A DNA stretch of 64,000 bases from Trichosphaerium sp. ATCC 40318 (Eukaryota; Protista; Tubulinea). The position numbers and the translations under genes were made by a program. The notes under the pieces were generated by a model. It worked only from the letters and a program-made list of their open reading frames with translations. It was not told the origin of the DNA and did not search any database. Location of the stretch: the NCBI GenBank assembly GCA_038496445.1, contig JALMLS010000322.1, positions 806,001 to 870,000 on the forward strand, written 5' to 3'. Shown in pieces: positions 39,396 through 44,468 of the stretch. Within the stretch, counting starts at the first letter, position 1; the number at the start of each line of letters is the position of its first letter.

Positions 39396-40468
39396 TTACA
39401 AAAAGTTCAAGTCAACACCAACACCACAAACTGTTTTATCACCAGCATATTGCTTGATTGAAGGGCTAGTCCATCCACCGAAAGCTCTGAAGTCTGTGAA
39501 ATCTGGATAACCATCATAGTGAGCATACCTAAAAAAAAGAGTAAGAACAAAAAATCTCGTACTTTAAATAACCAGTGAAGATGTTGACTTGACGTACCAT
39601 AGAGGGAGTTCACCAAATTCAGAGTATCCAGCAGAGAAGATTGATCCCCATTGATATTCGTTTGTGTAGATACCACATGGATGTCCAGAGAGCTTACATT
39701 CAGCTACCAACTCTCTCAAAATATTTTTGTTTTGGGCGTAGCTCTGTGGCCAGTACTATTCAAAAAAACGGTGAGAAAACAATGTTGTAGGTAAAAAAGG
39801 CGAAGATTCCAAAAAAAAAGTAGAGAGTCACAACTTTTTCTCCTGATGGAGTGGGAATGTACACAAAGAGTGCACGATGTGGGTAATCAAGAAAAAACGT
39901 ACTTGTTCGCCTTCGATATCAATCCAGATGGAACCGTACGTAGCATTAAAGTCACGTAGGTACTCTACCATATGTTTCATTTGCATTCCAGGTGTGTATT
40001 CTCCTCCTTTGCATGTTGGACATGGGAACACTTAATAATGCGTATTAGACGTAAAGAACAACGATACGAAAAGTACTCGGCGTTTTTTTAACCTTATTCC
40101 GCGAGACACTTTCTAAAATCGAAAACCGCTTTAAACGCTTGTTTTCTTGCGTGTGCACTACAATAGTACGTACTGTATACATCTACGGTTTCAAAACCTC
40201 CTGCGTAAGCATTATAAATAGTATGTGGTGCATTGCTGTCTGCAGCGCCTACACTCTCCCAAGCCTTAGAAAGGGTAAGATTACGCGATTTTTAGGTATT
40301 GCAACTGTAGGCACGTACACGGACAACAGCAAATGAGTAGCCGCTTTGATTTAGACATTTAAAGTCGTTTGGCAAGATAAGTTGTGAGACATCAACACCC
40401 CTGACGGCAGATGCAGTGCCACAAAAGAATACAACAGCGAGTAGTGCTGTTAAGACGAAGGAGTTCAT
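39396..40468 (-). CDS. Secreted GH25-like amoeba-type lysozyme, multi-exon
   Basis: Signal peptide then GVDVSQ; FPCPTC, IWIDIEG, LPLW|[30 protein letters not shown]. Confidence 0.9.
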
Positions 40469-42317: not shown

Positions 42318-44468
42318 ATGAATACTCTACCAAATGAAGTGCTGGTGTTAATTGCCGAGCAATTGACGTTCAAATCCATGTACAGAGCATGTCGCGTGTC
42401 TGTACTAATGAGAGACGCCGTAACAACGTGTAATAAATTCAAAAACGGCAAACTGTTCTATACTGCTCGGGTACATGTTACATGCATTAAAGTGAAAGCT
42501 AACCAGTACACAGAGAAGAAGAACACGAGTTTTAATGAAAAAGGAGCTCAAAAGAATCTCAAACGACCCTCCAATGGATATAAGCGCTGGTCCAGATAGT
42601 AGTGATAATATGAAGTGGACTGCTACAATAATAGGACCTGTAAAAAAGCGTTACATTTCACTTAAAATCATCGAAATATCTGTATGCCTAACTATCTTAA
42701 CTGCAGGAAGATTCTCCCTACGCAGGCGGAATATTTTTTCTCGATATTAAAGTACCTTATAGTACGGTTTTGTTACATATTCCATAATGTCTGCTTCCTT
42801 GATGCAACTCTGAAAAGTTTTGTTTTTTGCAAGTACTTTCCTCACGTATCCTTAAAGCTCATTTTTTATTTAGACTACCCCTACACCTATTTAAAAATAA
42901 CGTTCAAAACAAAAATTTTTCACCCAAACGCACGTGACAACTATTTATTTCTTTGTCAAATCACAAATGATAATTTAACTCTTTACCTGTAACAAAAAAA
43001 AAAGTTACCTGTAACAAAATTGTCCCATACATATTTCTCAGCGCCCTCTTTTCAACTTTCTCTGATATGAACATAATCCGTCCCAATCATGGTTGTAAGT
43101 GTGAGGCGCACACCATAATGAATTTAGCATTTGCCAACAAAGCTGTCGAATCAATTAACTGATCCCAATTTTTCCATTTTTTTCGCTAAGTGTTTATAAT
43201 TTTAGATTTATATTCCATCTTTTGACCACACACCACTATGTTAAGCTTCTACGTGTTGTAGTGAATGACATGCAATAATAAAATCTATAAATGGAATGTT
43301 TTATAATGGTAATGGAGTTGGGTCACATTGCAAAAATTACTTAGAAATTTTTTCTTGTTTTTTTCAAATTTGTCACATGTGGTATGCTGACTCTTGAATT
43401 TAAATTGTACTAAATTCTATTTCTAGATGGTATATATAGCTCATATACAAGCTTTAAAGTTGAATTTTGAATACGAATTAGCTACCAGCACGTCCAGAAA
43501 ATGTATTTTTGTGATATTTGCATGTTTTTAAAACGCTGTTTTTGTGCTACAATTCAACACGTGTTCAAAATTTCAACTATGAACATTGACCACACACTGT
43601 ATTGTTCGTTCTCAAAAAACTTTTTTGGAGTACAAAGTACAACATTGCTGCCAAAAACTGTGTTTTTTTGTTCGCTCCAAATTTTGTTTCTGTTTGGATA
43701 AAATTATCCAACGTACTACACTTTATCAAGTGTCTAGGTAGTGTGAAGATGTACTGGCCTCGGTATTAGTGGTAAGGGGTACAATTAAACAAATATATAT
43801 CATTAAAACTCGATAAAGAACCAATGACCATGACAAGGCTTGCTATTATCTTTCCAGCGCCTAAAATTCGTGTTATGTTACTTTTAGCGTAGTTTACGCT
43901 TGTGTTAGCTTATTTTAACGGTTTTTTGTAAACCTTGCTGTAAGCGGTATTATACGTTTATTAGGCGCTAAAAAATCAGATGCTGTGCGTATTTACGCTA
44001 GTGTTAAACAGTGTATCAGATTAGGGTTTATTCTGCTTATTTGCACTTTTGCGTGGCTACAATAGGTAATTAACATTGTTTTAAGGTCATTTTAGTGGTC
44101 AATAGTGAGTTTTGTTGAAACATGTTACAGGTAATTTTTTTTTTTGTTACGGATAACGAGTTTAAATACCGAATTAGGTGATTTGTAATGATTCTAGTCA
44201 AAATCAAGGTCTAGTATGTAATTCTGTTTATCATGGACTCAGTACATATTCTATTGATAGATGTTTAATGATGATCAGTGCTCACTTGTCAAAACCTGGA
44301 ACAGGTGCGTTTGTTATTACAGCAAATTTAGGTTTTTTTTTAAACTTTACTTTTGGAATAGATTGCAAGCCATGCTTTAACTCTCATGCGAGTGAATTAC
44401 TAGAAAATAATCTTTCAGAATTTAAAAAAGTAGCTGCTGGGTGGACAAAGAGATATGCGTCATATTAA
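42318..44468 (+). CDS. F-box-ubiquitin-conjugating enzyme (E2/UBC) fusion protein, multi-exon
   Basis: Exon 1 MNTLPNEVLVLIAEQLTFKSMYRACRVS (F-box) splices in phase 0 (42470->42514) to KELKRISNDPPMDISAGP ... W.ATIIGP|EDSPYAGGIFFL ... F.TKIFHPN|VICN ... GLVC ... WTKRYA. Confidence 0.82.
42973..44167. mobile_element. Putative non-autonomous TIR element filling the 1.25-kb intron (42930-44177) of the F-box-E2 gene
   Basis: About 43-bp imperfect inverted repeats containing TTACCTGTAAC-A(10-11)-TTACCTGTAAC-like subrepeats at 42973-43015 and 44124-44167; interior has no credible ORF; no TSD recognised. Confidence 0.65.

Follow-up and report, generated by a model that had tools for sequence, protein, structure and literature searches.

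The 64,000-nucleotide stretch of Trichosphaerium sp. ATCC 40318 analysed here (the window; positions 806,001 to 870,000 of contig JALMLS010000322.1) carries on its plus strand, at positions 42318–44468, a gene of six open, in-phase exons amounting to 624 nt (207 codons plus a TAA stop), as verified by a base-by-base check. In the predicted product an F-box is followed, in one chain, by a linker of some 12 basic residues and the UBC fold of a ubiquitin-conjugating enzyme (E2), and this architecture is real at the level of the sequence. The host assembly comprises 70.3 Mb in 642 contigs, which are referred to below by labels such as C2, C33 and C7; the gene itself lies on C2. Its exons and introns, and the mobile element that interrupts it, are as follows.

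42318–42470, plus strand: exon 1, start codon and F-box, LPNEVLVLIAEQL...CRVSVLMRDAV; 51 codons, ending in phase 0
42471–42513, plus strand: intron 1, 43 nt, GTACAT...ACAG, with a CTAAC branch-like motif
42514–42639, plus strand: exon 2, basic linker RRRTRVL followed by E2 helix alpha1 and strand beta1, MKKELKRISNDPPMDISAGP...TATIIGP
42640–42706, plus strand: intron 2, 67 nt, GTAAAA...GCAG
42707–42761, plus strand: exon 3, EDSPYAGGIFFLDIKVPY, ending in phase 1; positions 38–54 of the UQ_con profile
42762–42873, plus strand: intron 3, 112 nt, GTACGG...TTAG; position and phase as in intron 2 of the C33 UBE2D gene
42874–42929, plus strand: exon 4, YPYTYLKITFKTKIFHPN, ending in phase 0 exactly after HPN; UQ_con positions 56–76
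42930–44177, plus strand: intron 4, 1248 nt, GC-AG with donor GCACGTG; 61 nt long before a transposon insertion
42979–44161, no strand assigned: the transposon, a 1183-nt non-autonomous piggyBac-type element with terminal inverted repeats of about 40 nt
44178–44304, plus strand: exon 5, divergent catalytic-loop region VICNDSSQNQGLVCNSVYHGLSTY and helix alpha2 SIDRCLMMISAHLSKP, ending in phase 1
44305–44361, plus strand: intron 5, 57 nt, GTGCGT...ATAG, in frame and stop-free
44362–44468, plus strand: exon 6, C-terminal helices DCKPCFNSHASELLENNLSEFKKVAAGWTKRYASY and the TAA stop

An initial annotation, made from the sequence alone, had proposed that an F-box exon splices in frame to an E2. Its six-exon model is the best available, and the claimed join stands in so far as every exon has an open frame in the right phase and the splice signals fit, with donors 1 to 5 reading GTACAT, GTAAAA, GTACGG, GCACGTG and GTGCGT and all five acceptors conforming to YAG; the junctions themselves are deduced from the sequence. 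The open frame of exon 1 has its first ATG at 42318, and the next gene upstream runs divergently on the minus strand from 42031, so that exon 1 is a plausible first exon. Retention of intron 5 would leave the frame open, as a 96-codon open reading frame (ORF) at 44178–44468; a coding intron 5 was nevertheless rejected, as helix 2 and helix 3 return to their canonical distance once it is removed.

Exon 1 scored above the Pfam cut-off on both F-box profiles, with 26.3 bits on F-box-like PF12937 (cut-off 24.3) and 24.6 bits on F-box PF00646 (cut-off 20.5), and it contains the pattern LPxE[IV]L..I...L...C..V..L, which bears out its identification as an F-box. The exon gave no match among PDB chains, and F-boxes usually have no single-chain PDB match; a genome search found no close paralogue of it. 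In a predicted complex of the F-box exon with only the C-terminal exon of Skp1 (58 residues) the median was 0.32 against a mark of 0.34 and the controls reached at most 0.01, a result that speaks neither for nor against binding. The Skp1 of this genome (C137:79701–79844) belongs to a canonical three-exon gene within C137:78201–81344, minus strand; the C-terminal 58-residue exon (positions 1492–1665 of that locus) contains the entire PF01466 domain, and more Skp1-like copies are found on C57, C88/C430 and C51. The F-box repertoire of the genome is very large: a first look gave at least 1809 candidates for PF12937 and 1398 for PF00646, and all of the 150 hits scored per family were over the cut-off.

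The N-terminal half of the E2 fold is well supported. Searched exon by exon, the gene gave colinear matches to UQ_con in exons 2, 3 and 4 (profile positions 2–37, 38–54 and 56–76, with 19.4, 12.6 and 18.6 bits), each of them below the 27-bit cut-off but with a rough sum above it; profile positions 77–140 remained unmatched. Exon 2 alone matched chains of UBE2D and EhUbc5 in PDB with E values of 1e-6 to 1e-5, and the HPN motif that had been reported as retained is indeed present at 42921–42929, exon 4 closing with IFHPN. Helix alpha1 and the beta-sheet half are well kept, including the ISAGP strand, the Ser of which is a backside ubiquitin contact in UBE2D (UbcH5). The full Ubc4-like fold of the initial annotation thus holds for the N-terminal half, while in the C-terminal half only helix 2 and the last helix can be detected.

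The nearest genomic relative of exon 2 is a UBE2D/Ubc4-type gene at C33:185800–187200, which is also the best relative of exons 3 and 4. The identity to this gene amounts to 15/28 residues in exon 2, 12/16 in exon 3 and 10/18 in exon 4, the score of exon 4 being reached by 0/5000 shuffles; exon 3 is 75–81% identical to E2 exons on C33 and C7, and the identity of the N-terminal half to UBE2D ranges over 54–85%. In the reconstructed C33 gene a phase-1 intron falls in the D of DYPF, exactly where intron 3 is found here before (D/N)YP, and a phase-0 intron lies directly after HPN, as does intron 4; this latter intron is common, in the same position and phase, to the E2 genes on C33, C7 and C185. 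The other intron positions differ from those of the C33 gene. Because intron positions and phases are common with the C33 gene, the E2 part arose by genomic duplication of a UBE2D-type gene and not by retroposition; judged from these sequence features, the UBC part descends by such a duplication from a UBE2D/Ubc4-type gene of the same genome. The gene as a whole was probably assembled by the placement of a phase-0 F-box exon before the UBE2D duplicate in this F-box-rich genome, and the N-terminal F-box sets it apart from the C33 gene.

The C-terminal half presents a different picture. The helix 2 and the C-terminal WT.(K/R)YA helix of the C33 gene are still recognisable: SIDRCLMMISAHLSKP corresponds to TISRVLLSISSLLTEP of C33 (shuffle p 0.003) and AAGWTKRYA of the last helix to ARAWTQKYA (shuffle p 0.0004), and the two stand in the correct order. 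They are the only parts of this half that are demonstrably E2-like, its overall identity to UBE2D being about 25%. Exon 6 matched the UBE2E C-terminus in PDB weakly (E 0.37), and its best matches in the genome are E2 C-termini on C408 and C59. The C408 locus belongs to a gene pair (C408:22000–24800 and C29:71000–73900, minus strand) in which a long Ser/Thr/Lys-rich N-terminus is apparently spliced in frame to an E2 fold; these genes keep HPN, have Ser at the position of the catalytic Cys (HPNIHNSSGHFSHSL) and contain no F-box, and their C-terminal helix is the best genomic match to exon 6. Canonical UBE2D has about 70 residues after HPN, and the 77 residues that follow HPN in the present protein fit a UBC fold in length.

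Between HPN and helix 2 the likeness is lost. Exon 5 alone gave no Pfam match, and against a hidden Markov model of the catalytic segments of seven canonical E2s of the genome it scored −0.8 bits, a value reached by 632/3000 shuffles. The gap from HPN to the Cys of GLVC is 13 residues, compared with 7–8 in nine canonical E2s of the genome, in agreement with the lengthened spacing reported before; relative to the C33 gene the stretch leading up to the Cys is 6 residues longer and the one following it 2 residues shorter. These nine E2s have C[LIV]xx[LIV] from the Cys onwards, whereas here the Cys is followed by NSVY, and LDIL and Trp are replaced, as the initial annotation had noticed. No Cys combines a distance of 7–8 residues from HPN with the surroundings G-x-[IV]-C-[LIV]-x-x-[LIV]. 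The further claim that GLVC holds a Cys at the catalytic position is borne out only in part: the Cys is there, but the loop resembles an E2 no better than shuffled sequences do, and its catalytic role is deduced from its position. In fact the loop contains two Cys motifs, VICND directly after HPN (2 residues before VIC) and GLVCNS 11 residues later. VICND is an equally good local match to ICLD; GLVCNS, which resembles N-x-G-x-I-C, is the better candidate of the two for a catalytic Cys. The SPA motif for RING contact and the NPxD gate loop, both present in the C33 gene along with LDIL and Trp, are absent as read from the sequence of the C-terminal half, which holds five cysteines in 77 residues, including DCKPC (CxxC) at the gate-loop position.

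The junction between positions 42929 and 44178 that the initial annotation proposed, which brings this half into the gene, lies at an ancestral intron site but is of the GC-AG and not of the GT-AG type. The window contains 26 copies of the donor heptamer GCACGTG where 4.1 would be expected (a 6.4-fold excess), a count reached by 0/100 shuffles. Three consecutive open exons of one plus-strand gene end exactly at GCACGTG (32073, 32299 and 32487), as would be expected if the heptamer represents a class of GC-AG donors. In a UBE2G-like gene (C42:203100–204200) a 42-nt GC-AG intron (donor GCATGT, locus positions 424–465) is confirmed by homology; this intron is in frame and stop-free, so that six-frame searches read through it, and only its removal restores HPNVYSSGKVC. 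Putative GC-AG donors are frequent in this genome, and the donor of intron 4 fits among them. A GT donor 4 nt downstream (GCAC|GTGACA) was rejected, every in-frame acceptor leading to a stop. Two alternative in-frame junctions exist, one from 42988|GT, a transposon-borne donor, to 44198, and the other from 42954|GT to 44209, which would give HPN+8+Cys spacing but uses a GTCAAA donor and an AAG acceptor; on sequence grounds both rank below the GC-AG junction.

The 1248-nt length of intron 4 is due to the insertion of the 1183-nt element into an intron of 61 nt, a usual length within this gene. A comparison of the ends between copies showed that the element is flanked by a TTAA target-site duplication (42975–42978 and 44162–44165), and the insertion spares the splice donor of the intron as well as its final 12 nt and acceptor. 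Copies are present at C193:29140–30338 (99% identical) and on C13 (93%), among others; further members of the family lie on C397 and C135, and 3.1-kb relatives contain an intact 690-residue ORF with DDE_Tnp_1_7 and a PHD finger. Judged by the 99% identity to another copy the insertion is recent, and the existence of 1.2-kb non-autonomous copies up to 99% identical suggests recent activity of this piggyBac-type family. In an 8-nt inverted repeat (CAAATCAC at 42957–42964 and GTGATTTG at 44178–44185) the 5' portion of intron 4 is matched to the opening codons of exon 5, perhaps fortuitously, perhaps as a means of drawing the splice sites together.

The gene is, as far as its sequence tells, intact and single-copy, and no relatives of it were found. 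Exon 5 occurs once in the genome. The 96-codon ORF of the C-terminal half, searched against 1.84 billion representative sequences, retrieved four repetitive unrelated proteins and no UQ_con; a word search starting from the F-box region found no candidate, and the ESM Atlas yielded no usable match. A scan of 37 E2-like loci of the genome for F-box motifs found no F-box fusion among them; an F-box located 1.3 kb downstream of an E2 exon on C100 belongs to another reading unit and was discarded. The 77 codons of the C-terminal half are free of stops in spite of about 75% divergence from UBE2D, which has a probability of about 0.005 by base composition and argues that the divergence took place under selection for an open frame.

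The layout of an F-box joined to an E2 is unusual but has a precedent, missed by the initial annotation, in the fly protein Morgue. Drosophila Morgue combines a zinc finger, an F-box and a ubiquitin E2 variant (UEV) domain and binds SkpA and K48 polyubiquitin in vivo (PMC3787007); it has an N-terminal C4 zinc finger (CX2CX12CX2C), its F-box is rich in Trp, an invariant Gly replaces the catalytic Cys, and the protein is confined to invertebrate animals (PMC3787007). As in Morgue, the F-box of the present protein stands N-terminal to the UBC fold in one chain and the UBC domain is atypical at its active site, and the binding of SkpA through the F-box and of K48 polyubiquitin by Morgue is the very function that we propose here. 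In contrast to Morgue, the present protein has no zinc finger, starting as MNTLPNEV directly with the F-box; there is no Trp in the F-box exon, Cys is found instead of Gly, and HPN is kept. It is a 207-residue protein derived from an amoebal UBE2D-type gene. Since the defining features of Morgue are missing and the origin lies in a UBE2D-type gene, the present protein is a convergent analogue, independently invented, and not a member of the Morgue family. It may have a functional resemblance to the UEVs (Mms2/Uev1 and the UEV domain of Tsg101), which employ a UBC fold with a degenerate active site for non-covalent binding of ubiquitin; however, UEVs lack the Cys by definition and in most cases HPN, and the present protein, which has both, is not a UEV in this sense. 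The E2/E3 hybrids UBE2O and BIRC6 also unite an E2 fold and an E3-type targeting module in one chain, but they are giant proteins with canonical active sites, contain no F-box and act independently of cullins.

We tentatively prefer, as possible though well short of established, the reading of the protein as a Morgue-like adaptor of the Skp1–Cul1–F-box (SCF) ubiquitin ligase whose E2 fold would bind ubiquitin and would probably be non-catalytic. The F-box would dock on Skp1–Cul1–Rbx1 and hold the UBC fold at the place normally taken by a substrate-binding domain. There the UBC fold would serve, in a UEV-like manner and through its kept alpha1 and beta-sheet half, as a non-covalent receptor for ubiquitin or a ubiquitylated protein, and would not act as a RING-served, thioester-forming E2. 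Such an SCF might act on already ubiquitylated proteins, extending or editing their chains, or might hold polyubiquitin, as was proposed for Morgue. This role is favoured because of the asymmetric divergence of the fold, in which alpha1 and the beta-sheet are kept while the catalytic, SPA and gate loops are remodelled; among the functions suggested by the initial annotation, a ubiquitin-binding adaptor fits this pattern better than a self-priming SCF, given an unrecognisable loop, an aberrant spacing and the loss of LDIL, Trp, SPA and NPxD. Several observations weigh against the adaptor reading. HPN and the two Cys motifs are kept in the region of the active site, where pure ubiquitin binding does not need them, and the integrity of the fold is deduced from exon-wise matches. 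As no close paralogue or orthologue was found, conservation cannot be traced; a search for RNA sequencing runs of this genome listed none, which leaves the junctions as they are read from the DNA; and the 99%-identical transposon copy in intron 4 might impair splicing.

The retained HPN would agree with an active E2 tethered to SCF, with E1 charging the Cys of GLVC (or of VIC) and the ubiquitin being discharged from the substrate-receptor side, as in a built-in or self-priming device that needs no contact with Rbx1. The N-x-G-x-V-C context of the Cys, which resembles NGSIC, the retention of helix alpha1, which is used for E1 binding, and the maintenance of the ORF all agree with this, and the loss of SPA would be sensible if the F-box had replaced docking to Rbx1. 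We nevertheless consider an active tethered E2 unlikely: the gap of 13 residues between HPN and Cys departs from the 7–8 of every canonical E2 examined in the genome, the gate-loop Asp is replaced together with the post-Cys LDIL and Trp, and the catalytic loop, in an exon with no Pfam match, is indistinguishable from shuffled sequence. A broader version, quite improbable in our view, would have a functional cullin-docked E2 held at the receptor position of SCF, either thioester-competent or with an active site remodelled into a metal- or redox-sensitive cluster. If it were true, the substrate would receive its ubiquitin from the side of the F-box, with no part played by Rbx1; to our knowledge, no cullin-RING ligase delivers ubiquitin from that side.

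The same divergence could also mean that the gene is a young chimera, non-functional or decaying, a by-product of rampant F-box exon shuffling with a fresh transposon in an intron whose donor is not GT. That it is a single copy with no orthologue found, that the listing of RNA runs is empty, that its C-terminal half is strongly diverged and that the transposon is a recent arrival, 99% identical to another copy, are all to be expected in that case. This seems to us somewhat unlikely, as 207 codons have remained free of stops and frameshifts despite the deep divergence (P of about 0.005 for the C-terminal half alone), all five introns have usable signals, the transposon is cleanly intronic and has damaged neither the donor nor the last 12 nt and acceptor, and helix 2 and the last helix can still be made out in the right order. 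Separate or differently spliced products are the least probable of the explanations considered. They would comprise an F-box-only protein of 93 residues made by retention of intron 1, an E2-like protein starting at Met 42535, or the products of other intron-4 junctions; retention of intron 1 does give an open 93-codon product from the ATG, Met 42535 is close to the ancestral E2 start, and intron 4 has its two alternative in-frame junctions. The F-box and E2 exons, however, are only 43 nt apart, with a consensus GTAC...CAG intron and an in-frame join; a separate promoter would find no room, and the E2 homology begins upstream of Met 42535 (RVLMKKEL compared with RRLQAEL). The other junctions would rely on the poor GTCAAA donor with its AAG acceptor or on transposon sequence, whereas the GC-AG site coincides with a conserved intron position.

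Combinations of an E2 fold with an E3-type module are rare. According to a eukaryote-wide survey, the E1 and E2 families use accessory domains of their own and are scarcely linked to the remaining ubiquitin domain network (PMC4327156). If an F-box–E2 chimera has evolved separately from Morgue, a UBC fold at the receptor end of SCF would be a solution reached more than once, and with its 207 residues the protein offers a small system in which to ask whether the UBC fold at the receptor serves to read ubiquitin or to transfer it. The catalytic question is directly testable here, since HPN and the cysteines are kept, unlike in Morgue. Should F-box exon shuffling have produced the gene as a neutral by-product and nothing more, the gene would still document the birth of such chimeras.

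As to the surroundings of the gene, Pfam scans of the neighbouring ORFs gave nothing informative. A multi-exon gene on the minus strand at 39407–40468 encodes a secreted protein with an N-terminal signal-like peptide; its separate exons have no Pfam match, and the protein may resemble the GH25 or amoeba-type lysozymes.

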